Shown: positions 4,901 to 28,317 of the stretch, one piece after another
Layout of the letters: every line of letters begins with the position of its first letter
Position numbering within the stretch: position 1 is the stretch's first letter
NCBI RefSeq assembly: GCF_002113885.1
Contig: NW_018408913.1
Span: forward strand, 451,537 to 515,536
Direction of reading: 5' to 3'
Source of the DNA: Mizuhopecten yessoensis
Taxonomy: Eukaryota
Length of the DNA stretch: 64,000 nucleotides
Made by a program: the position numbers and the translations under genes
The notes under the pieces: model-generated
Databases searched by the model: none
What the model saw: only the letters and a program-made list of their open reading frames with translations
Told to the model about the DNA's origin: nothing

Positions 4901-7900
4901 GTATACAGGACCTACCATAGTGACGCCATTTCCAAATTTCTTCTGAAGCTGATTCTTCAACTTCTGAAACTGAAAATGTAAAAAAAAAGCATGAATAAAT
5001 AGAGTAATTTTCCATTTTAATCAATTCTATCTATATTCAATACACATGCCACACTGCTAAACTGCTAGCCACTTTCTATCAACTCTGTTAGCTCATCTGG
5101 AAGAGCATCAAAGACAGACTTGTAAGTGGATGCAATGAAAAATAATTACCACTGTAGTGTTACAAACAAGTTATCATCCTTGATACTCCAGGGGTTCGCT
5201 CACTTACGTTCTCTACACCCCTGGAATATTTCATGACGAAATCAAAGGCTGATTAGTGTGCGCCATCTTGAAAAAGAGATAAGAAGTTTGATCCTTTGAT
5301 GTACATTGTACATAAATAATCTCATGGTTGTTTAATGGTAAATTTGACTGACTTTGAAGCCGGGTATTGCCCCTCTGTAATCTTCAAAGGACAGGTATCT
5401 GCCTAGCGATTGGTCAATTATTTTTTTTACCCGAGACCAATCAAATAGATAGCCACATGCCTTCAATTTTCTATGACATTTTCCAGGATTGCTGAGAGCG
5501 AAAGTGAGCATAACCCCTGGAGTATCGAGGATGCTACATTATATCCATGCAGGTTACAACAGATTCAGAACATGGATACTGTCCATCCTTCAGATTCAAA
5601 ACATAATGTTTGTTTGTTTGTGTTTATATTTAACAGCCCATCGACAACTGTGGTCATTTAGGCCTGAACTGACACGTCGTTGACCGTGACATTGTCAACC
5701 GGCGCCTTGCCTCGAGTTACCTGTGCGCAAAAGGGTGCAGCAATGTCTGCACTCTCGACTATCCTCATTTATACATAAATGTCTATCCTACAAACGCAAT
5801 ACAATATACATAAGGTCCTTAAACAGATATAACATATTTCTAGACCACTGTTTCAATAAACTGATTTAACACATCTTTATATACATTCAACCACAAATTC
5901 AATTCACATAATTATAATGTTAACCAATACAATTGAATGTCATAGCTATATATATAATGGTTTTAAATATAGAGCCTACCAAATAATTTCATTTCAGTAA
6001 AAGAAAAACAAATGATACTTTATTCAAATTCAGATTTATTTATTCTAATTGTTTTTTAAGGTGTACAGTAAATTGTATCGATGTAATACCAAAATTGTCT
6101 CTAGAAAAATAACTACAGGACACCAACTCATCAGAATCAATGGAAGACATGTACAGAACACACACACTCTTTTGACACAAACTAAGAGCAAACATTAACT
6201 TCTGAATTTGTAAGGTGTCAATTATGACCAACTGATCTGTTTAATACGGACAAACTTTTATTAAATATTACACTGCCACTAATTATATATCAACAGCCAA
6301 CAACAATTAGTCTAGGATTTAAATTCTGCTATGGATGAAACCTCTGGAGTGGTTTTTTAAATGTGATACAGATTTTATCACATGCATTTCACATTTTCAT
6401 AGTGACAATAAATTATAATTATACTGTTAGTTTTACACTCTAGCTACCAAGGCTAATAATTCCACTTTTAATGGATTATTTGATGTGGGTTAATTAGAAT
6501 CAAAAGATGAAATTAGACAGTACAGAACAATCTTCAAACAACCAACATCACTGTAATTAGAGTTGTAGCCATGTATGAAATATAAGCAGGTCAGGAGAGG
6601 TGTTGGATATATCACAGAAAATCAGCACGGGAGAGCTGAGGTTATAGCCTGCTGCCAGCTGTCACATCAACCCACAGGTAGTCAATCATACACGGGAGTG
6701 TTCAGGGATGGAACACAGGTCCAGATATATAACACACACACATATATGGAAATGTACAAAATGTGAATGTAAAATAGGGGTTTGTAAGTGGAGGGAAGAC
6801 GAGAGGTTAAAGATCCCTGTCTTTAACTGTTTAAAGTCAAGATCAGTCACTTATATAAACCTATGAAAAATGAAATAAAAATAAAATTTGTTACCAACCT
6901 ATTCTATTTTGTTCAGACATGTAACAGGAAACAAACATGTACTTTTTGTTTTGCCTTACTGTATTCTGCCTAGTAAGCATCTGAGCACTGCGAAAATTGC
7001 AGAATCTTCCAAAATTCTCAAATAATAATCATAATAGACATTTTCAACCAAGTTAGTAAATTATGGTGAAATCTAGAAGACATACTTACTTTGGGGGCGT
7101 ACCCTCATGCACCACTGAAACATAAATGAAATGTGTAAACAAGAATTAATCAGAAAATGATAAATTAATTTCCAGACAATCAAGATAACTGCAGGTATCA
7201 ACAGAAAGATCTGCTGAATATGAAGTGATTTGTTATACATCATCACATGTACAATGTTACTGAGAACAAATATAACACAAGCAAATTCGTGGAATATTTA
7301 TCCCCCGCTTGAAGGACATATTGTAGGTTAAAATTATTGAGGTTAGGTTTAAACATGCGAGTATCTTGCTGTTGAGACATAATGTATAGCTTGAAACTTG
7401 AAGAAAAGCCCTAGACCTCATTGAATATCCGTAAATATGCACAAATCACATCAGTTGGCAAACTAAGCATGAGTTAGATGTGCATACGGAATATGGTTGA
7501 AGCATCTTAACAATATCTACAGCAATTATCACACGAAAACCAAAGAGTGCCCGAGATGGGTGGAAAGACAAAGGAACACAAACATTGTTATCAAGTTTGA
7601 AGGAATTTGGCTAATATTTGCTGGAGTCCAATTAAAGTGGTTGTCAAACTTGGCTGAGCCCTTAATACGTTGAACCCTGTTACTAAGTTTCAAGACAATC
7701 GGATAATATTTGCGAGAGTAAATTACAGAAACGGCAAATGATGCTTTTCGTTATTCAAGGGGCCATAACTTCGCAAAATGGGGTCCAATGAAAGTGGTCA
7801 TCAAACTTGGCCCAGCCCTTAACGAATTCAACCCTGTGACCAAGTTTGAAGAAATCTGTTAACATTTGTTGTAGTTATTGCACGGAAATGAAACGCAGCA

Positions 7901-13200: not shown

Positions 13201-16200
13201 TGCAAGTTTTACAGACAATTTTGCCAATTTATTGGTCATCGATAATGAGTTGATACATGATGTTAACATGTTGAAGAATTGAAAATGAAATGATCTAAGC
13301 CTGGGTTTTGAGTGATAAAACAAATGAATCCATAAGGCAGCTTTATATCGATAGATGAGTGAACCGTTCTTGCTGAATTTGACGGTACATCTTTTACAAT
13401 TTATTTCCATCAAAGGATGATTACAATCCACAAGCATTAATCCTCCAGATCAACACTTGTTTGTTTCCAGAGCCCTGTGTTGGGAGAGAGGAAGCAGTGC
13501 TGTACCAGCCAGTATGGTATCCACTACCGAGAACGGTATGGCAAAGCTGGTACTGGAGATCCATGGGGTAACCAAGTCATCTAGCGACGAAGACATGAAC
13601 GTAGAACCAGTCCTTAAGGCTGGAAAGAAGAGTGACCAGGAAAAGTCAGAGAAAACACCACAGGTAAAAAAGCAGTATTTTCAATGCAAGGTGAAAAAAT
13701 AATCCATACTTAAGTGAAAACTGCTAAATCCTCAGTTTAAAGGATTTTTACACAAATACCGATCTGTCATTACATTACTTGTTTTTTTCTCAGGTTGTTG
13801 AAAAGAAGACTGAGCCAAACAAACCAACCAAACAAAAGAGGCGGTCTAGCATTGGTAAAGGGGAGAAGACCCCTACAGGACCCTCATCTAAGAAACAGCG
13901 TAAAAATACAAGGGTCCGAGGCTTGAAACTAAAGCTGGAGAATGAATCGTCATCAGAGGAGAAATCCGACAAAGAAAACTTCAGTATGGAGGAAGCAAAG
14001 CTTTCAAAGTCGGCTCAGTCAGAAAAGAAAATTGTCCACAGCCAGCCTCCCAATCTCACAAAAGTCACTCTCTCCGTCTGTAAAGATGTGACAAGCAGAG
14101 GTACAAAACTTTATAGTTGTTTAATTTCACAGTTCTAATATTTAATAATCACAACATCATGAAATATGAATCCAGAAAATATTTTGAGTATAAACGTTGT
14201 AGAAAACGATCCACTGTGGTCATTATTTCATCATACTAGTTAAAATATTAATGGCAATTGCAGTATTTTTTGTCATCAAATTTGCACAAAAGTGAGTTTT
14301 TGAAGATACATATATATATGCCTGCTAAATTGGAACTAATTATGTAAAAAGTATGGTTGTAGCTTTACCTATAGCAAATGTAATTGCTTTATACCAATAG
14401 GAAAAGTCCTTGTAGCGTTGGAACAGTCTGTAAGACAACAATTCTGATATATGTGATAGTCCGTTTCTCACAGCTTCAGAGAAGTGAAGTTGTGGTTTTA
14501 GACCATCACAGAGAAATCCATGTCCTCCACCGGTGAGGTCATGGAGTGCATTGCTTCACCCAGGAAAACTGGGGACAGGGTTGTCCTCCATAGCTTTACT
14601 GGTTTTGCGGATGCATACACCATTAAAAACAATAATGAACGAAATGAAAATTACAAAATTGAATAGCAATGTTGTTGCCCCATTTTCAAGATAAAACCAA
14701 TTTTGCATTATCAGATTCAATAATTGCAGAGATGCAAAATATAAACGGTACATTTTTGTTCACTTCAAGGATTTCTGAAATCTTGAACCTCTGGAAAATA
14801 ATATATTTAAGAGAACTTTAGACCTTTATCACCTATTAAGTGATATAGATTAAGATAACAATTATGCTTTACAGCTGGCCCCAACCCAAGCAGTCGATGG
14901 GGTCACAGCCTGTGTATGATACCTGACAAGAAGATGGCTGTACTTGTTGGAGGACAGGGGGAGCGACAACAGCTCAGCAAAGACTCCGTTTGGACACTCG
15001 ATCCAGGTAAGTCTAGCTAGGGCATGGGGCAATATGTTGATGTGTCCTGATACTTTCTTTAATGATACAATGTAAAGAAATACATTACAATGACACAGTA
15101 TGGTGATACTTCCCATATATGAGAAAAACACTTCAAATGGTTGTTTATGTCCATAGTAATGTTGTCTCGCTGCCACAAAGTAGCAGAAGCGAAACTTAGG
15201 TGTTGCTTTTCCGGCGGCATTGACATGAAGTTTTGTGTTTAAGTTAGTTTCTCTGAAACTATAAGTGCTACACCAACCAAACCTGACATGTTCATTGATG
15301 GTCAAAGCGGGGCACAGGTGAGATATGAATCTGAATGGCTTGTTCATTTAAATAAGAGGGTATAATTTACAGCATGTGACCAAGAACATCAGGAATTTCT
15401 AGCCACTTATAAAAGGAAACTTATGTTATAGGTCCCTCCTTATAATCAAGAGGTCCAGGGATCAAACTCCAATCACAGACACAGGGATATTTTTGTGTCG
15501 AAGGAAAACAATATAAACATTTTCTTGGTATTGAACTCTTTCAACTATTGTTAATTTGCAAGCAGCATTAGAACTTTTCTTCTTGTCTGGGGATAAAAAG
15601 CAGTGTGCTGAGACTCTATAATTTTTTAATAAGGCATATTATAAATTTTATTATATATGGTTAACTTATTTATCTTTCTTGTTTTTATTTCATGAAATAA
15701 AATTTTAAATACACTGCAATAATATTTTCAAAGAGACTTACCTCCCCTTGATCAGTTGATGCACATTTCACTAGGGGTCTGTTTGTTTATGCGGAACAAC
15801 TGGTTTGACCGTTTATAAATGTAACAATTTCAGGTATAAATCCTCGCAGACCTGCAAATGTTTTTGCATGCCTTGTAAGACATTGTCAAGGCTTGCCTGA
15901 AAGCAGCATCAGATCACTAGGTCCGACCGGTTTGACCGTTTAAACAAAAACGGCCTAGTATTTTAACAAGACCGAAAACTTGACACAAGTTAACTTAAAT
16001 AACAAATTATTACCACATGGTGTGAATTTAGGTGATTTTTTTAACACATAAAATGGCACATAACGACATTTTTAACATCTGTGGGTTGGTATATAGGTAT
16101 AAGCCCATTGAGGAATTCAGATTTTCAGTCTTTTCAAATGAAGTACAGTCAGAATTCCAATGACTATTGGGTGAACAAACTAAATAGCACAACACTAAAT

Positions 16201-19200
16201 AATTATACCCAAATGATTTACAGATAAAAGTGAACTGATAGAGAATATAATGTAATAAGGAGTGTTTTACTCATTTCTCAGTGACAAGGAAGTGGCGGTG
16301 CCCTGAGCTGAAGTCGGAGACACAGAAGCCCGAGTACAGGATGGGCCACACAGCCACATATGATCCCATGGTCAAGTGTATATATGTGTATGGAGGCTCC
16401 AAGAACCTCAAGTGGTTCCATGATGTACATATGCTGGACATAGACGAGTGGAAATGGCAGCTACTCAAGGTAATTATAAGCCTTTGGAAACTCTTTTTGA
16501 TTTTTAGGCTGCAAAATAGAAGGTAAGGATGGACATTTTGAAATATGTAACAAAGCTTAAATTTAATCTAAGCAATTTTGGGACGTAAAAAAATTATCAG
16601 GGATGAAGATATTTTTTATAATGTCAAACATTTTACAATAAAAAATTACAGGCTACAGGCACATAAAGAGCTGTTTGGTTGGATTAGACAAGTCATTTGC
16701 AGACAGAATATTTGCCAGATTGAACCGAAGGTACTGACAAAGTGGCAATAAGGGGAGGGAACTATAATATTTTAGGATGAAAATTATGTGACATGTCTAT
16801 TCATATTATCTGTGTTTCATTGCCAGGTGTCTGGTAAAGCCCCAACGCGTGCCTACCACAGTGCGACACTGTACCGTAATGAGCTGTGGATCTTCGGTGG
16901 CGTGTATCCCCGACCAGACCCCCAGCCTGATGGCTGCAGTAACGATGTGCACATCTTCTCTCCTGTCATGGAGAGTTGGTACACACCCATCATCAAGGGA
17001 GACAAGCCCATTGCCAGATCTGGGTATGTCAATATTCTGCCTATGCTTATGCTCATTCAAAATAGAGGGAAAATTGAAAATATTTCATTAATGTTTCAGA
17101 ATTGTGAAACACTTGACAGAAGAAATTGGGCATGGTACAACAGATTCATCAATAAACATTGCAGATTAATATCAAGAATAACAAACCATGTCAATATATT
17201 TTAAGATTTGGTAAAATTAGCATTAAATGCCTCCGTCAACTCTTGCTAGTATTACACTAGGTAATGGATATATTGTCAATGCTCTTTGATGACAAATATG
17301 CTGTTTGTGAATTACCTGTGAGGTATACATCGGATCAGATCTGGACACTATTAACTGATTTATACATGTTTTCAGCCACTCGGCCACGCTGATGAAGGAC
17401 CAGCTGGTGGTGTTTGGAGGCTGGGATGCTCCTTATGTGTACAACGACCTTCATATCCTTGACCTCAGTACGTGTAATGCTTTATGCCTTTTCAGCATTA
17501 GCCTTTTAGTGTAATTATTTTGATTTTGTTTGTTGCTTGAGTTTGCTCTGTTTACAGTATATGTAGTTGTTTGTTGACAAATTGATGAGATTTCTGTAAT
17601 GTTTAGTAATATTTCTATATTCCCCATGGTAAAAAATAAATAAACTCAAATGCATGCTTTCTTGTCCCTTAATACAACAAAATTGTTATAAAAACTTAAA
17701 CCTCCGACAATAGAACTCATCACAACACAAACTATTGTAGTATAAAGGACGACAAGACATAATAGCTGTAGATAAATAATCATAAAAATGTTTCCTCCTC
17801 CCCAAGTTGAACAATTATATCAAGAAGAAAACTGTCAACATGAGTATCTAAAAAAGTGTAGCTTACTTGTGCTTGCTGGCAACATGCTATATCATTTCAT
17901 GCACATAAATACACATCATCACTGGTAATATTCTTCATAAATATTCACATTTGTGTTTTTGTCAAACAATTGTTCATTCAAATTTCTCATTTCAGGTATG
18001 GTGGAATGGTCTCAACCCAAAGTCTCTGGTACTCCACCTAATCCACGCAGGTATGTCATCAATTTGGAAGTTTCTGCATTCAATTTTGTTAGGTGACCTA
18101 TGAATACATGGTCCATACAGGCTATGAAAAAGCTTAAATTGAGGTCAGTGCTTGGAAAATGTATGCATCCTTGAATTTGTTGTTTATGGGTTGAAAAGAG
18201 CTGGAATATTTTAAAATTATTTACCAGAGACAACTTGTATATTTTTCTATGAAAAACGTTTTAAAAAATGAATACATATTTTTTCAATTTAAATATGACC
18301 TTGAGCTAAGTACCAAATGCTGTTTAGGAACAGATTATTAGTAAATTGGCCAATCTGCAGAGAGTTACTGATTGTACAGTGTACCTTTAATATATTTTCA
18401 TTGTCAGAAATAAACGTTAGTTGATTTAGACAAAAATTCAGATTGGATAGAGCTCGGGTTAAACAGTGTATTGCATATTGTTGCAAACTTAAAACATAAC
18501 CTCTTCTTTCTCTAGAAATCGGCTAAAAAACTCCAAGCTCCTGGTAGAAGTAATGCTATAATGTTATTTTCAGTTAAAAGTTTTTGGTTGTGATTTGTTC
18601 TGTTAAATCTCTGACAGATGTCTTTTGATCTGTGACATCACAATGTTGGAAAATTTAGTGATTTAGTGTTGTTAATCTGCTCTCAACAGCTGGTTTTCCT
18701 ATCATACTAGTAGGTGGTATATGAGAGCATGTATAATTCAATCAATAACAAAGTCGCATACATTCAACTAATTCGTCTGTTTGTTTTTCCAGTTGGCATG
18801 CTTCCTCTGCACTGTCTGGAAACAGAATACTCATTCATGGTGGCTATGATGGCAATGTGGCCCTAGATGACACCCATGTCTTCTGTCTTGGTACGTAACA
18901 GATTATCAAGATGATGAATAGGGAAAATATAAGGTTTTCATGGAAATAGATGAAAAGAAGAAAGGTTGATTCTCTCATGTGATAGTCCGTTTCTCACAGC
19001 TTCAGAGAAGTGAAGTTGTGGTTTTAGACCATCACAGAGAAATCCATGTCCTCCACCGGCGAGGTCATGGAGTGCATTGCTTCACCCAGGAAAACTGGGG
19101 ACAGGGTTGTCCTCCATAGCTTTACTGGTTTTGCGGATGCATACACCATTAAAAATAATAATAATGATATACATTTCTGTGTAAACAGTTATTATTAAAG

Positions 19201-20981
19201 AATTAAAGAGCATAAACATACTAAGCTATCAACCCTTTTCAAAATAAAAAATTGATATGACACCAAATTGTCTGTTAGAACGCCTTCCTAGTCTCCGTTC
19301 TGAAACATCAACATATGCTACTCGTATTAAACCAAGACGATTTCACTATCCCACGATGTAGGACAGAACTTTTAAAAAAATCATTCATACCTTCATCTGT
19401 AACACAATGGAATTCCCTCAACTCCTGTATAAAGTCAACCCATTCTCTTGTTGCATTTAAAAACTGTTTCAAACATGATGTTGTTTCTATTCCAAAATTT
19501 TTAACAGTAGGAGATAGAAAATTTACAATTTTACACATCAGACTTAGGAACGAATGCAGCAGTCTTCAATATGACATTTATAGAGTTAACCTCAGTGATA
19601 ACCCTTTATGTTTATGTGGGGAAGTAGAAAATGTACATCACTATTTCTATACATGTCCAAATTACTCAACTGTAAGAAATCACCTGGTAAGAAATCTTAG
19701 GAACTTAAATCTTCTAGAGATCCTCCTAACAGACATAAACACACTTCTCTGGGGTAATCATGATCTCACTTTTGAACAAAACAGTAAAACCTTTAACTAT
19801 GTATGTAAGTACATTAAGGATACAAACCGCTTCTAGTAGGTAGTCTTAATTACAACAATTACATCATGTTCGAAGAATAATTTTTCTTTATCTGTGGGAA
19901 AACCTCGGTTAATTCTCTATGAGAAGGTCGGGGTACAGAGAAACAGTCGTCAACAACCTATTTTGTTAATTCAATTTAAATTTAAAAAAAAATGAAATGT
20001 ACATGTTAAGACAGCTATGATGTACCAGGTACATACAATGTATTTAAGTCAGGAGAGGGCTTAAATAAGTTGTAAAAACTTGTGCCCAAACCTTTTGTCA
20101 TTTTCAAGGCAATAAAAATATGTTTAAACCAATAGGGAAAATATAAGGTTTTCATGGAAATAGATGAAAAGAGGAAAGGAAATTTAAAGCCAGGTTGATT
20201 CTCTCATGTGATAGTCCGTTTCTCACAGCTTCAGAGAAGTGAAGTTGTGGTTTTAGACCATCACAGAGAAATCCATGTCCTCCACCGGTGAGGTCATGGA
20301 GTGCATTGCTTCACCCAGGAAAACTGGGGACAGGGTTGTCCTCCATAGCTTTACTGGTTTTGCGGATGCATACACCATTAAAAATAATAATAATGAAATA
20401 AATTTATGATGTAAATAGTCATTATTAAAGAATTAAAAAGGACTAAATTGAAAACAATGTTGTTGACCAATTTCAAGATAAAATCATTTTTGCATGCTCA
20501 GATCTATAAGATACATTTTTGTTCACTTCAAGGATTTCTGAAATCTTGAACCTCTGGATAATAATATATTTAAGAGAATTTTAGACCTTTTGCAGACGTT
20601 GCTCCATATTTTTTCAGTGATTTGTACTTGATTCTGTTTTTGTTCGGGCTTGGCTGGGTTATTGGTTGTAACTGGTTTAAATTATTATTATTTTTATATA
20701 TATATATACTGTCTTTTGTAGATTCCCTAACTTGGATGAGAATTCGTCTGGATCCCAAACCAATTGCCCGTGCTGGCCACCAGGCGGTGTGTCTGCCATA
20801 CTCCCATGACAATGACGACCAGGACGAGGTGTTAGTGTTCGGCGGTGGCGACAACGATGGTGCCTTCTACAGGGATCTCATCAGTGTCAATGTGGCTTTT
20901 AACCCGGAGCTGGAGATCATCAGTAAGGAAAATGACGCCCCGCCAGTCTTGTCTTGCATTGATGGCAATGTGACCTGCTAA
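10205..20981 (+). CDS. Kelch-repeat beta-propeller protein (RABEPK/KLHDC-like repeats) with N-terminal globular domain and charged linker, 582 aa, 11 exons
   Basis: Exons 10205-10263, 12652-12819, 13471-13663, 13794-14100, 14875-15006, 16282-16469, 16827-17023, 17376-17467, 17996-18050, 18793-18890 and 20722-20981. All GT-AG, total 1749 nt, in frame. Six Kelch motifs: PSSRWGHS..VGG, RMGHT..VYGG, RAYHSA..IFGG, RSGHSA..VFGG, RSWHAS..IHGG, RAGHQA..VFGG. Confidence 0.92.
12262..12333 (-). mobile_element. tRNA-derived SINE head
   Basis: Minus strand has box A GGTAGCTCAATTGATAGAGC and box B GGTTCAAATCC, but acceptor and anticodon pairing is poor. A second degenerate box B lies near 12110. Confidence 0.6.
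14453..14622 (+). ncRNA. SNORA79: Box H/ACA guide RNA for U6 snRNA psi31/psi86 (SNORA79/ACA65-like), copy 1, Kelch intron 4
   Basis: Hairpin 1 is GTGATAGTC/GACCATCAC plus CACAGCTTCA/TGAAGTTGTG, with H box AGAGAA 14 nt from the pocket. Its pocket CGUUUC + UUUUAG pairs with U6 CUAAAA-U31-U-GGAACG. The 3' hairpin pocket GCUUCAC + UUUGCG pairs with U6 CGCAAA-U-U86-C-GUGAAGC. The ACA box (14617-14619) is 14 nt from that pocket. U6 sequence is recalled from the human RNA. Confidence 0.88.
18979..19148 (+). ncRNA. SNORA79: SNORA79/ACA65-like H/ACA RNA, copy 2, Kelch intron 10
   Basis: Identical to copy 1 except one T>C in the hinge-hairpin loop; boxes and guides intact. Confidence 0.85.
19211..20130 (+). 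mobile_element. 5'-truncated, frameshifted non-LTR retrotransposon (CR1/L2-like ORF2 C-terminus plus 3'UTR)
   Basis: ORF 19315-19836 has KSFIPSSVTQWNSL, LHIRLRNECSSL and the zinc knuckle CLCG..ENVHHYFYTCPNY, typical of LINE ORF2 C-termini. It ends in AATAAAAATATGTTTAAACC. Confidence 0.85.
20208..20377 (+). ncRNA. SNORA79: SNORA79/ACA65-like H/ACA RNA, copy 3, Kelch intron 10
   Basis: Appears identical to copy 1 over 170 nt while the flanks are diverged; ACA at 20372-20374. Confidence 0.87.
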
Positions 20982-23347: not shown

Positions 23348-24768
23348 AACATTTCTACGATCCATACTAATAGTATTATTACTGATGTTCACGACAGTTT
23401 GGATTTTGATGTGGATCATCAGAATATGTAAATTTATAGTATACTTAAGTGGTATATATAGTCTGCTGTACCTCAATAGAATGTCTCCTAGAAAAATTCA
23501 ACACTATTTTGAAAGTTTTGTTACCAGAAATATATCATTGTTTTGTGACGGAAAAGAACGAGGCTTAAGTGAGCATGAACACAACGGCAACGGTGGTTGT
23601 TTTGAGGGCTGTGTTATCGCAGTTGTCCGGTATGAAACAAATTTTTCCGGTTTTGTTTCTTCTTAACAACGTTTTTCTAGTAATAGTACTAAGTAAGGCT
23701 GATATAAGCAACAATAATATATCCATGCGATGTTAGTGCTTTTAAGTAACTTTATATCAATGGACATGTTCTTTCTCTTATTTTGGCAGTTTGCTACTTC
23801 CCATTGATATTTTCTGACTATTTGGACCAACTGAGACAAACCACGACCAGCCAGTCTTCTGTTGTTAACGTGCCGTCAGTATCGGTACCACGTCGAGTTA
23901 AGATACTTATAATTCAGTGGCCTTTATATTTGAAACAAAATTGAAGGATGGATATGTTTCAATTCAAGCGGTTCTGATATTTTAATTGAAATGATATAAC
24001 GCAACTCAAACAAGAGGTTCTCACAATGTACCGCTTTCACCCGGTGAGGAAATACCACATTGTGACCTTTCTATACTAATACCATTCCAATATTGGAACT
24101 TTACACAATGATCTATATTTCTCGGACTGATGTTACGGATGGGAAGTTATATTTCCTATACAAACACTGACATCAATTATTCCTTGAAATAGCGTGGCGT
24201 AGGGAGCGAACGTGCTCCCGCGACTGGTGTCATCCCCCGCTAGCGGTACACGAGGGACGCCGACAGGTAATCACACATCCGATATTGGTCTGGGTTATAG
24301 CTGACTTGATGGCACTTTATTGGCTGAAGCGCACGGAAATAATTTGAAATAGTTTGCCTTCCAGTTTATGATGGAATGTAAAGGTTGAGTTTTATATCAA
24401 TCAATTGAGTGTACATTAAATGTATTTAAACCAATGCATGATTCATTGCCTTGCCATTATTACAGATATGAGAATTTGTTCGAGGTGTCCACTTTTTTCA
24501 AAACTGAATATCACATTTTCTCTCTGTAAAGAATGCACTTTTACAATAAAGCAAAAGGGCCTTCACTCTGTTTATTATTCCTTTCCACTAGTTGTTGTTT
24601 TCCTCTCGTAAGTATTGTTGTTGTTGCTGTTTCCATTGTGATTACCGTTGTTTCACTCGATTTATTGCTGTTTTTACTTTATTGTTGTTCCATTGCGTTA
24701 ACTCTTGTTAGTTAATATTTCCGGTTTCTCCTCTTGTTGGTATAACCATTCTTTTCCCGTGTAAATGT

Positions 24769-26996
24769 CGTTCGTTCCTCTTGTTTTGTTGTTCCTCTTG
24801 TTACAGTCGTTCCTTCCTCTTGTTTTGTTGTTTCTCTTGTTACAGTCGTTCCTTCCTCTTGTTTTGTTGTTTCTCATGTAACAGTTGTTCCTTCCTCTTG
24901 TTTTGTTGTTTCTCTTGTTACAGTCGTTCCTTCCTCTTGTTTTGTTGTTTCTCTTGTTACAGTCGTTCCTTCCTCTTGTTTTGTTGTTTCTCTTGTTACA
25001 GTCGTTCCTTCCTCTTGTTTTGTTGTTTCTCTTGTTACAGTCGTTCCTTCCTCTTGTTTTGTTGTTTCTCTTGTTACAGTCGTTCCTTCCTCTTGTTTTG
25101 TTGTTTCTCTTGTTACAGTCGTTCCTTCCTCTTGTTTTGTTGTTTCTCTTGTTACAGTCGTTCCTTCCTCTTGTTTTGTTGTTTCTCTTGTTACAGTCGT
25201 TCCTTCCTCTTGTTTTGTTGTTTCTCTTGTTACAGTCGTTCCTTCCTCTTGTTTTGTTGTTTCTCTTGTTACAGTCGTTCCTTCCTCTTGTTTTGTTGTT
25301 TCTCTTGTTACAGTCGTTCCTTCCTCTTGTTTTGTTGTTTCTCTTGTTACAGTCGTTCCTTCCTCTTGTTTTGTTGTTTCTCTTGTTACAGTCGTTCCTT
25401 CCTCTTGTTTTGTTGTTTCTCTTGTTACAGTCGTTCCTTCCTCTTGTTTTGTTGTTTCTCTTGTTACAGTCGTTCCTTCCTCTTGTTTTGTTGTTTCTCT
25501 TGTTACAGTCGTTCCTTCCTCTTGTTTTGTTGTTTCTCTTGTTACAGTCGTTCCTTCCTCTTGTTTTGTTGTTTCTCTTGTTACAGTCGTTCCTTCCTCT
25601 TGTTTTGTTGTTTCTCTTGTTACAGTCGTTCCTTCCTCTTGTTTTGTTGTTTCTCTTGTTACAGTCGTTCCTTCCTCTTGTTTTGTTGTTTCTCTTGTTA
25701 CAGTCGTTCCTTCCTCTTGTTTTGTTGTTTCTCTTGTTACAGTCGTTCCTTCCTCTTGTTTTGTTGTTTCTCTTGTTACAGTCGTTCCTTCCTCTTGTTT
25801 TGTTGTTTCTCTTGTTACAGTCGTTCCTTCCTCTTGTTTTGTTGTTTCTCTTGTTACAGTCGTTCCTTCCTCTTGTTTTGTTGTTTCTCTTGTTACAGTC
25901 GTTCCTTCCTCTTGTTTTGTTGTTTCTCTTGTTACAGTCGTTCCTTCCTCTTGTTTTGTTGTTTCTCTTGTTACAGTCGTTCCTTCCTCTTGTTTTGTTG
26001 TTTCTCTTGTTACAGTCGTTCCTTCCTCTTGTTTTGTTGTTTCTCTTGTTACAGTCGTTCCTTCCTCTTGTTTTGTTGTTTCTCTTGTTACAGTCGTTCC
26101 TTCCTCTTGTTTTGTTGTTTCTCTTGTTACAGTCGTTCCTTCCTCTTGTTTTGTTGTTTCTCTTGTTACAGTCGTTCCTTCCTCTTGTTTTGTTGTTTCT
26201 CTTGTTACAGTCGTTCCTTCCTCTTGTTTTGTTGTTTCTCTTGTTACAGTCGTTCCTTCCTCTTGTTTTGTTGTTTCTCTTGTTACAGTCGTTCCTTCCT
26301 CTTGTTTTGTTGTTTCTCTTGTTACAGTCGTTCCTTCCTCTTGTTTTGTTGTTTCTCTTGTTACAGTCGTTCCTTCCTCTTGTTTTGTTGTTTCTCTTGT
26401 TACAGTCGTTCCTTCCTCTTGTTTTGTTGTTTCTCTTGTTACAGTCGTTCCTTCCTCTTGTTTTGTTGTTTCTCTTGTTACAGTCGTTCCTTCCTCTTGT
26501 TTTGTTGTTTCTCTTGTTACAGTCGTTCCTTCCTCTTGTTTTGTTGTTTCTCTTGTTACAGTCGTTCCTTCCTCTTGTTTTGTTGTTTCTCTTGTTACAG
26601 TCGTTCCTTCCTCTTGTTTTGTTGTTTCTCTTGTTACAGTCGTTCCTTCCTCTTGTTTTGTTGTTTCTCTTGTTACAGTCGTTCCTTCCTCTTGTTTTGT
26701 TGTTTCTCTTGTTACAGTCGTTCCTTCCTCTTGTTTTGTTGTTTCTCTTGTTACAGTCGTTCCTTCCTCTTGTTTTGTTGTTTCTCTTGTTACAGTCGTT
26801 CCTTCCTCTTGTTTTGTTGTTTCTCTTGTTACAGTTGTTCCTTCCTCTTGTTTTGTTGTTTCCCTTGTTACAGTCGTTCCTTCCTCTTGTTTTGTTGTTT
26901 CCCTTGTTACAGTCGTTCCTTCCTCTTGTTTTATTGTTTCATTTGTTACAGTCGTTCCTTTCTCTTGTTTTGTTGTTTCTAATATAACAGTCGTTC
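24769..26996. repeat. 39-bp minisatellite, ~57 near-perfect copies
   Basis: Unit GTCGTTCCTTCCTCTTGTTTTGTTGTTTCTCTTGTTACA; variants only at the array edges. Confidence 0.98.
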
Positions 26997-28317
26997 TTTT
27001 CCTTGTTTTTTGTGTCTCTTGTTACACTTGTTATTTTTATTGTTTCTTCTCTGTTTGTTTTTGTTTGACAGTGACTTTTTATTTCAATATCTCTTCACCT
27101 GTAACAGTGGCCCTTTGTAAATATATCGATAACCTGGTCGAGTTACGAGTCTATATATATATAAAAAAAAAATCTCAGTTTATTGCTAAAACGGTTTTGA
27201 ACCATATTGTCAGATGTGAAGCAAAAAATAATAATAATTTGGAATTCAGTGTTCTTTTGTTGTTACTGTCATTCCTGTTTCAACTGAGAAAAGATGCATG
27301 TTTTGATAACAAATATCCGCATCCAAGTGCACACTATTAAAAAAGACACTTAAAGTGCATGCTGCTAATTATGCTTGAACATTACAAAGAAGTGAATAGC
27401 CGGATTTTGTGTCGTAATTAATATTCTCTTTGCGGCAGTCCACGAGTGTTCAGTTATAAGGCTAATTAAGCCGACAAGGACCAGCATTCCAAGACAGCTG
27501 TAAGACTAATACTCTGGAATCCCAGGCACAAGTACACATCGTAGTGCCTGACCAAGTTTTGGAGTGCCACGTACTTGTATGGTTACATTCATATCAGAAA
27601 TGAGGAAATCTTATCTGATCGGAAAATCATGCGGGTCCTTCTGCTGCACCAGAAACGTTTTCGAGGCATAAGGGAATTGTTGTGATTTCATTTTCAGAAA
27701 ACCTGTACACTGTGATGTGTCTCATAGTTCTTCTTAAGGACCAAGCTGCATAGAGTCATAGTATGTTCAAATAAATGACATTGACCTCACATTCAGGACA
27801 TCGGTTCAAATCAAATGACTTATTTTCAAGAACTGTAATAAGAAGCTAAGTTGGGTAACGGTTTATCGGTTTGTTTGTTCATTCGTTCAATATTTATCAG
27901 TTTTGTACAAATGAATGACTGTCTCTGTAGGTCACAGAGGTCAAATGTGTTCTATCAATAAATCAATATACCAAGGTTAACGAGAAGCGCTCAAAGGTTA
28001 GTTCAAAGGAATGACAATGTCGTACCTTCAATATCACAGAGGTCAAATGTGTTTTAAAAATGCAAATGTCTTTTCCCAGTGAATCACGAAGCACATATTA
28101 ATGCTACTTTGCCAGTAACTTGCATATATGAACGTCTGTTTAAATGAATTACCTAGAAGTGTATTCAACGTTACAGCGGTCAAACATATTGAAAATTCCA
28201 AACAACTCTGCTAAAGAACCACAATACATTAAAAAACCTTTATAGCCTGTATCTTTCAGGGGTGAAGGGCCGATACTAAAATCAAACATGACCGCCGTAG
28301 TCTTTTGATTGGCTTAA

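Follow-up and report, generated by a model that had tools for sequence, protein, structure and literature searches.

A four-copy intronic gene for a probable H/ACA RNA in the scallop Mizuhopecten yessoensis, a distant counterpart of vertebrate SNORA79 with predicted pairing to U6

Does a mollusc possess an RNA guide for the pseudouridines of U6, and how would such a gene multiply and change hosts? U6, the catalytic RNA of the spliceosome, carries at position 31 a pseudouridine that is conserved from nematodes to mammals; to our knowledge, a guide for this modification has been described only in vertebrates. The question is raised by a 64,000-nt stretch of the Mizuhopecten yessoensis assembly (contig NW_018408913.1, positions 451,537 to 515,536; hereafter the window), which a preliminary description had read as harbouring three near-identical H/ACA RNAs directed at U6 within a Kelch host gene. 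All coordinates below are positions in the window on its plus strand unless indicated otherwise.

By using repeat searches and alignments, a block of about 170 nt was found three times in the window, at 14453..14622 (copy 1), 18979..19148 (copy 2), and 20208..20377 (copy 3), which bears out the earlier reading of a repeat with at most one substitution amid diverged flanks. Copies 1 and 3 have the same sequence (0 differences in 170 nt), and the sole change in the block of copy 2 is a T>C at 19060 (RNA position 81), which turns the stem pair U81-A145 into C.A. The 3' flanks of copies 1 and 3, in contrast to their blocks, have accumulated 8-17% substitutions and many indels (P of about 1e-6 for an unchanged block at the lower rate). 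The alignment of copies 2 and 3 extends over 317 nt with 8 mismatches and 6 gaps, only one of which falls inside the block. Exactly four copies were found in the 988-Mb assembly by BLAST, by Rfam RF00600, and by a purpose-built covariance model, each used alone, so the block is not a high-copy dispersed repeat, a possibility that had been raised beforehand; moreover, no diverged paralogues beyond the four could be detected genome-wide with either of the two models. Copy 4 lies outside the window, 125 kb downstream on the same scaffold, in an intron of SF3B2 on the sense strand. It carries one substitution, C155>U, which keeps the pairing with U6 G80 as a wobble. Its identity to copies 1-3 extends from 3 nt upstream of the 5' stem to the ACA, the flanks being unrelated; directly 3' of the ACA, copies 1-3 read CCA and copy 4 reads AUA, and an interrupted A-rich tract is present 3' of copies 1-3 and absent 3' of copy 4. 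An apparent fifth, partial copy at the end of contig C81014 was rejected, as this contig represents the alternate haplotype of window positions 15884-19020 (97.8% identity over 1,542 nt).

RNAs of the H/ACA class consist of a hairpin, a hinge, a second hairpin, and a tail. The hinge contains an H box (ANANNA), an ACA lies near the 3' end, and the distance from the target position in each pocket to the H or ACA box is 14-16 nt. The block follows this order. With -63.8 kcal/mol and z = -4.19, it folded into two hairpins with internal loops in both the MFE and the centroid structure, and none of 200 shuffled sequences was as stable. In copy 1, the hinge contains the H box AGAGAA (14510..14515), whose distance from the first base of the 5' pocket's 3' arm is 14 nt, and the ACA box occupies 14617..14619, where the identity among the four copies stops. 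The 14-nt spacing that had been proposed for both pockets was counted in each hairpin (RNA positions 43-56 to the H box and 150-163 to the ACA). The block is thus presumably a gene of about 170 nt for a guide RNA of the box H/ACA type, small nucleolar or Cajal-body, which, like other RNAs of its class, would accumulate as a discrete species bound by dyskerin, Nop10, Nhp2, and Gar1. In H/ACA RNAs of the Cajal body (scaRNAs), each hairpin carries a CAB box (ugAG) in its apical loop. The apical loop of the scallop 5' hairpin, AGAGAAG, is CAB-like (AGAG), and that of the 3' hairpin, GGAAAAC, has no CAB box. Human ACA65 is coprecipitated by WDR79 (PMC3884663).

The family to which this RNA is related was examined by scanning 7 kb against all 4,227 Rfam families. 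At a permissive threshold, SNORA79 (RF00600) was the only credible match, covering the model over its full length (1-143) with 36.4 bits and an E-value of 0.0021, and it was also the only family with an E-value below 1. In the genome-wide scan with this model, the four copies were the only matches (36.4, 36.4, 36.3, and 32.4 bits, the last being copy 2), with an E-value of just 0.07 at genome scale. The gathering score of RF00600 is 55 bits, an operational cut-off trained on vertebrates; since the copies score below it, the scan of the whole window at the gathering threshold returned no match. Thus, the expectation that a covariance scan would point to SNORA79 held at the permissive threshold and failed at the gathering score. 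As the RNA is not a member of the Rfam family by that test, it was classed as distantly homologous and functionally equivalent to SNORA79, and the gene is probably unannotated because the cut-off misses it. A SNORD11-like match on the minus strand at 17844-17931 (E 5.7) was regarded as chance, being antisense to the host and having an unmatched D box.

According to the literature, and in agreement with the preliminary description, human ACA65/SNORA79, hosted by GTF2A1, is predicted to guide U6 psi31 by its 5' pocket and psi86 by its 3' pocket (PMC1636440; PMC7960923; PMC3884663). The scallop RNA therefore has its pockets in the same order and, like SNORA79, is an intronic two-hairpin H/ACA RNA, with a 5' pocket facing the region of U6 U31 and a 3' pocket that probably faces that of U86 (PMC1636440; PMC7960923). 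In the alignment with SNORA79, the guide arms, the H box, and the ACA are conserved, and the 3' arm UUUUAG and the core UUUGCGG are identical to the consensus. On the other hand, the scallop RNA is longer (169 nt compared with about 140-143 nt), as the apical part of its 3' hairpin is extended by about 30 nt; its 5' pocket carries one change that makes a wobble and its 3' pocket two that make mismatches; and it is present in four near-identical copies. The hosts also differ, being a Kelch-repeat gene and SF3B2 in the scallop but GTF2A1 in human and an HTR2C intron in chicken (PMC1636440, PMC2653536). These comparisons support the earlier suggestion of an invertebrate SNORA79 counterpart in a different host, and a search of the literature brought up no SNORA79 from an invertebrate. 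The scallop RNA is an addition from invertebrates to a known type of guide RNA, and no new type of system is involved.

Pairing was evaluated with the U6 of this genome, recovered from the assembly. In the 5' pocket, the 5' arm CGUUUC (14462..14467) pairs with U6 G33-G38 and the 3' arm UUUUAG (14496..14501) with U25-A30, each with one G.U pair, giving 6+6 bp around U31, so that U31 and U32 remain unpaired. In the 3' pocket, the 3' arm UUUUGCG (14603..14609) pairs through UUUGCG with U6 C79-A84, and its first U is mismatched with U85 next to the target; in the 5' arm CUCCAC (14525..14530), CAC pairs with G88-G90 and UC with A92-G93, separated by a C.A mismatch at A91, so that 6 + 3(+2) bp surround U86. 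The preliminary claim that both pockets pair with U6 therefore stands fully for U31 and in an imperfect form for U86. U6-31 for the 5' pocket and U6-86 for the 3' pocket each ranked first among 2,537 uridines of U6, 18S, and the available 28S/5.8S, a set that includes 28S only in part because this sequence is largely N in the fetched rRNA loci. No better target for either pocket was found in 18S, the available 28S/5.8S/ITS, U2, or U5. Random arms matched the observed score in 2 of 200,000 trials for the 5' pocket and in 20 of 200,000 for the 3' pocket. By complementarity, the 5' pocket is predicted to position U31 for pseudouridylation, and the 3' pocket probably positions U86 through weaker pairing. 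In C. elegans, U6 carries a pseudouridine at the equivalent of position 31 (PMC1276797).

The placement of the copies in the host gene was established by RNA-seq junctions. Copy 1 lies in one intron of the Kelch gene (14101-14874), whose 3' splice site is about 250 nt downstream of it, and copies 2 and 3 lie together in another (18891-20721), where reads run from 18890 straight into 20722; this confirms the sharing of one intron by two snoRNAs that had been noticed at the outset. Both introns are GT..AG and on the same strand as the snoRNA copies. Pfam matches to the exons directly downstream of copy 1 (14873..15003) and directly upstream of copies 2 and 3 (18790..18890) agree with the Kelch host that had been named from the sequence. 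With regard to expression, contigs of one RNA library, X2, cover the block at a high depth that may be inflated by adapter sequence inside them, and the neighbouring intron bin has zero coverage. Copy 2 is nearly absent from these contigs (depth 0.74), and three mRNA-seq libraries have essentially zero reads on the block.

Copies 2 and 3 share one intron because a 5'-truncated LINE was inserted with a target-site duplication of about 300 nt that holds the whole snoRNA gene. The left unit of this direct duplication (18917..19212) contains copy 2 and the right unit (20131..20447) copy 3, and between the two copies is a fragment of a 5'-truncated non-LTR retrotransposon (19213..20133), whose ends fall exactly on the duplication boundaries. 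The fragment is one of at least 40 dispersed copies of a family in which the 3' end is common and the 5' ends vary, and it is called a retrotransposon on account of this copy pattern, as its ORF (19315-19836) has no Pfam match. The arrangement of two snoRNAs in one intron is thus a by-product of the LINE insertion.

Several other explanations of the locus should be considered. That a structured and duplicated intronic element resembles a guide RNA by chance is a very remote prospect: it would account for the sub-threshold Rfam match, but two hairpins, both boxes, two 14-nt spacings, and the first rank of precisely those two U6 sites for which the matched family is the predicted guide make too great a coincidence, and the sense orientation in introns of two unrelated hosts, with conservation limited to the RNA, also argues against it. 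An alternative of more weight, although still unlikely, is a real SNORA79-like H/ACA RNA in which the 5' pocket (U6 psi31) alone works and the 3' pocket is degenerate or serves another target. Both arms of the 3' pocket are changed from the Rfam consensus, each losing a pair with U6, and U6 around this site is identical to that of human, where the vertebrate consensus pocket pairs perfectly; moreover, U6-86 leads the best rRNA site for this pocket by one score unit only (22 compared with 21 for the runner-up rRNA sites). However, the minimum guide-substrate pairing is 8 bp and the pocket is flexible (PMC6049503), so that the nine pairs in contiguous arms (6+3) exceed the minimum and additional unpaired bases are tolerated. 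The top rank of U6-86, the wobble that preserves the G80 pair in copy 4, and the exact 14-nt spacing to the ACA are also more easily reconciled with a working pocket.

It is also conceivable, but improbable, that only one gene works (for example, the SF3B2 copy) and that the Kelch copies are recent retroposed or segmental passengers, which appear conserved through recency or gene conversion. Mammalian snoRNA retroposons (snoRTs) show similarity only within the RNA body, with an A-rich tract after it. The scallop copies resemble them in that copy 4 is similar to copies 1-3 in the RNA body only and that the A-rich tract follows copies 1-3; in addition, the stem-breaking change of copy 2 and its near absence from the X2 contigs would suit a passenger. 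On the other hand, the marks of snoRNA retroposons (a poly(A) tail and short flanking target-site duplications) were not found around the copies, copies 1 and 4 included, where neither a clean poly(A) tail nor a flanking target-site duplication is present. Unlike snoRTs, copies 1 and 3 have a common flank at the DNA level, and the bases after the ACA differ between copy 4 and the others. Copies 1 and 3 are not young, as their blocks are identical between flanks that differ by 8-17%. No departure from the Kelch-copy sequence was reported for the X2 contigs on the block, which points only weakly to expression of the Kelch copies.

Taken as a whole, the reading we favour, and hold to be quite likely, is a four-copy intronic H/ACA guide, distantly homologous and functionally equivalent to SNORA79/ACA65, which is directed at U6 U31 and probably U86 and of which one pair of copies was made by a LINE. 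Under this explanation, the snoRNA would be transcribed in sense orientation within introns of the host pre-mRNAs, and trimming would presumably leave an RNA of the form hairpin-H-hairpin-ACA in association with the dyskerin complex. The 5' pocket would then place U31 of U6 for pseudouridylation, and the 3' pocket would probably place U86. Insertion of the 5'-truncated LINE would have generated the long target-site duplication and hence copies 2 and 3, and the near-identity of the copies may be attributed to purifying selection, probably aided by gene conversion. A broader combination remains tentative, with slightly less than an even chance in our judgement: a dual-pocket psi31 and psi86 guide that predates the divergence of molluscs and vertebrates, its movement between the unrelated hosts SF3B2 and the Kelch gene, gene conversion across 125 kb, and a single LINE-associated target-site duplication of an entire working gene.

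Were the RNA a true mollusc homologue with both pockets ordered as in vertebrates, the dual guide would predate the protostome-deuterostome split, and the RNA would offer a non-vertebrate handle on the function of U6 pseudouridines. The weakened 3' pocket may serve as a natural experiment on the pairing that a pocket needs. In addition, the locus shows how a snoRNA gene can multiply and change hosts, through a long target-site duplication tied to a LINE and through probable concerted evolution.

With regard to the hosts, a word search with the SF3B2 exon retrieved many exon-sized fragments, and no snoRNA was found in 80 metagenome contigs with the same exon by either a motif regular expression or the purpose-built covariance model. 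The protein of the window's host gene was searched in Pfam one exon at a time, and the host is therefore named to the level of the Kelch-repeat family; the nearest solved chain for one of its exons is KLHDC3 (E 9e-14).

A repeat search of the window identified a direct repeat family with three copies around 14432, 18958 and 20187, and alignment placed a 170-nt block on the forward strand at 14453-14622 (copy 1), 18979-19148 (copy 2) and 20208-20377 (copy 3), in agreement with the preliminary description of near-identical copies within diverged flanks. Copies 1 and 3 are identical over the whole block, and the sole difference of copy 2 is a T>C change at 19060. The common 3' flank of copies 1 and 3 (approximately 205 nt) has diverged by 8-17% substitutions, the figure varying with the aligner, and by numerous indels, yet their blocks are free of differences (P about 1e-6 if the lower rate of 8% is taken). 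Copies 2 and 3 have approximately 300 nt in common, with 8 mismatches and 6 gaps, just one of which lies within the block.

Genome-wide searches covered the 988 Mb scallop assembly (82,659 contigs). Four full block copies and one partial match were detected by BLAST, and both the Rfam SNORA79 model and R1, a covariance model built here, retrieved the same four loci and no others; the block is therefore not a high-copy dispersed repeat, a possibility the preliminary description had raised. Copy 4 (C5586:597053-597222; 4954-5123 of the extracted locus L024) is located on the same scaffold, about 125 kb downstream and outside the window. It carries a single substitution, C>U at RNA position 155 within a 3' pocket arm, and its flanks are wholly unrelated to those of the other copies, the identity beginning 3 bases before the 5' stem and ending at ACA. 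The partial match was rejected as a fifth copy: it lies at the terminus of C81014 (locus L023), a 3.1-kb contig that represents window 15884-19020 in a second haplotype (about 98% identity). Some haplotigs thus remain uncollapsed in the assembly and can inflate copy counts.

For the 169-nt RNA starting at 14454, two long hairpins are predicted, both interrupted by an internal loop (fold energy -63.8 kcal/mol; z = -4.2), with an H box (AGAGAA, 14510-14515) in the hinge and an ACA box (14617-14619) in the tail. As had been proposed, the spacing from the start of the 3' pocket strand to the box is exactly 14 nt in both hairpins. The T>C change of copy 2 turns the U81-A145 stem pair into C.A, which matches its lower model score. 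A CAB-box-like motif (ugAG) was found in the apical loop of the 5' hairpin (AGAGAAG, 14477-14484) and was absent from the 3' hairpin loop; human ACA65 has been reported to coprecipitate with WDR79 (PMC3884663).

No Rfam family was matched at gathering thresholds. At permissive thresholds, the expected SNORA79 (RF00600) was the sole credible match, covering model positions 1-143 end to end with a score of 36.4 bits (E 0.0021 when 7 kb were searched with all 4,227 Rfam families, 0.07 genome-wide), and identities were concentrated in the guide arms, H box and ACA. A weak SNORD11-like match at 17844-17931 on the reverse strand (20 bits, E 5.7), which has a C box but lacks a matching D box and runs antisense to the host gene, is probably due to chance. 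Human SNORA79/ACA65 is a 140-nt RNA hosted by GTF2A1 and, as the preliminary description had assumed, the predicted guide for U6 psi31 (5' pocket) and psi86 (3' pocket) (PMC1636440; PMC7960923; PMC3884663), whereas the scallop copies reside in a Kelch-repeat gene and SF3B2, and the apical part of their 3' hairpin is approximately 30 nt longer than in vertebrates. Taken at the level of sequence, these features support the preliminary interpretation, with the four-copy family as a distant invertebrate homologue of SNORA79 with predicted U6 guide pockets. Among 80 metagenome contigs carrying the same SF3B2 exon, no homologue was found by motif search or R1.

The pockets were compared with the species' own U6. 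The only canonical U6 gene found (L006, C5405:117695-117801, reverse strand; 118 bits) agrees with human U6 in its numbering and across both stretches facing the guide, the exception being position 25 (U, where human U6 has C); the other U6-like loci (L007-L012) are truncated or altered in the ACAGAGA box or the internal stem-loop and look like variants or pseudogenes. In the 5' pocket, UUUUAG would pair with U25-A30 and CGUUUC with G33-G38 (6+6 bp, two wobbles), leaving U31 and U32 unpaired. In the 3' pocket, UUUGCG faces C79-A84 and CAC faces G88-G90, followed by a C.A mismatch and UC with A92-G93, and the base facing U85 is a U, which forms no pair; the vertebrate SNORA79 consensus, in contrast, pairs with U6 at both of these positions. 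Every uridine of U6, 18S and unmasked 28S/5.8S/ITS was scored (2,537 sites, much of 28S being N). U6-31 ranked first for the 5' pocket (score 25; best rRNA runner-up 23; reached by 2 of 200,000 random arms) and U6-86 for the 3' pocket (22; 21; 20 of 200,000), and no better sites were found in U2 and U5. The proposed pairing is thus solid for the predicted U31 side; the U86 side is weakened by its two mismatches and is plausible but not secure, considering that at least 8 pairs are needed in a guide-substrate duplex and additional unpaired bases can be accommodated in the pocket (PMC6049503). Pseudouridine at the equivalent of position 31 in C. elegans U6 (PMC1276797) is consistent with an old guide.

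Host introns were defined from splice-spanning reads of three RNA-seq runs together with one contig set. Forward-strand exons were obtained at 14873-15003, 16279-16467, 16825-17022, 17375-17467, 17996-18047 and 18790-18890, with GT..AG introns. The loose read ends found at 14873 and 18890 correspond to window 14069-14098 and 20722-20751, respectively; together with the splice sites, this places copy 1 in intron 14101-14874 and both copy 2 and copy 3 in intron 18891-20721, uninterrupted by an exon, as previously suggested. The proposed Kelch host was also recovered, as exons queried singly match Kelch-repeat families (closest solved chain for one exon, KLHDC3). Copy 4 is hosted by SF3B2, in a sense-strand intron that follows the exon ending ...GDLYYE and whose 3' splice site lies 200 nt downstream of the copy; the exons on either side match DUF382 and PSP as well as human SF3B2 (E 4e-50).

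Between copies 2 and 3, 19213-20133 belongs to a dispersed family of at least 40 genomic copies (83-96% identity) with a common 3' end and varied 5' starts, a signature of 5'-truncated non-LTR retrotransposons; a 173-aa ORF inside it (19315-19836) has no Pfam match. Its ends abut direct duplication units 18917-19212 and 20131-20447, which carry copies 2 and 3, respectively. Judged from the sequence, this arrangement has the form expected of a long target-site duplication, which would account for the two copies sharing an intron.

At approximately 167 positions, 0-1 differences are seen between copies with flanks that diverge by 8-17% (1 and 3) or cannot be aligned (4). The preliminary description had invoked selection or gene conversion; the identity against diverged flanks is confirmed, and for the mechanism, selection acting on each base in all four redundant genes seems unlikely, so that we infer gene conversion confined to the RNA, plus selection, as the simplest reading. 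Retroposition would be a possible source of the unrelated flanks of copy 4 and the A-rich tract 3' of copies 1-3; however, neither a clean tail nor a short target-site duplication was seen, and the three bases 3' of ACA differ between copy 4 and copies 1-3.

In three mRNA-type libraries, block depth was at intron level (between 0 and 1). Contigs of a separate RNA library, X2, span copies 1 and 3 with reported depths of 2,461 and 2,659, compared with 95.8 for host exons, 0 for the bin directly after copy 1 and 0.74 for the barely covered copy 2. In two of these contigs the sequence passes into Illumina adapter, at 20221 and 20362, which suggests short inserts, yet the depths may be inflated; X2 coverage weakly supports expression. 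Intronic stretches 15220-16020 and 20093-20132 stand out in the RNA libraries by a very high depth of contigs and numerous variant letters; expressed dispersed repeats, not host exons, are the most likely source. Besides, a 39-nt minisatellite at 24767-27026 (58 copies, 98% matches) is a source of long artefactual forward-strand ORFs, and a tandem repeat in an SF3B2 intron (L024:3883-4485) contains long repetitive ORFs, on the forward as well as the reverse strand (NNESVINNESMI...).
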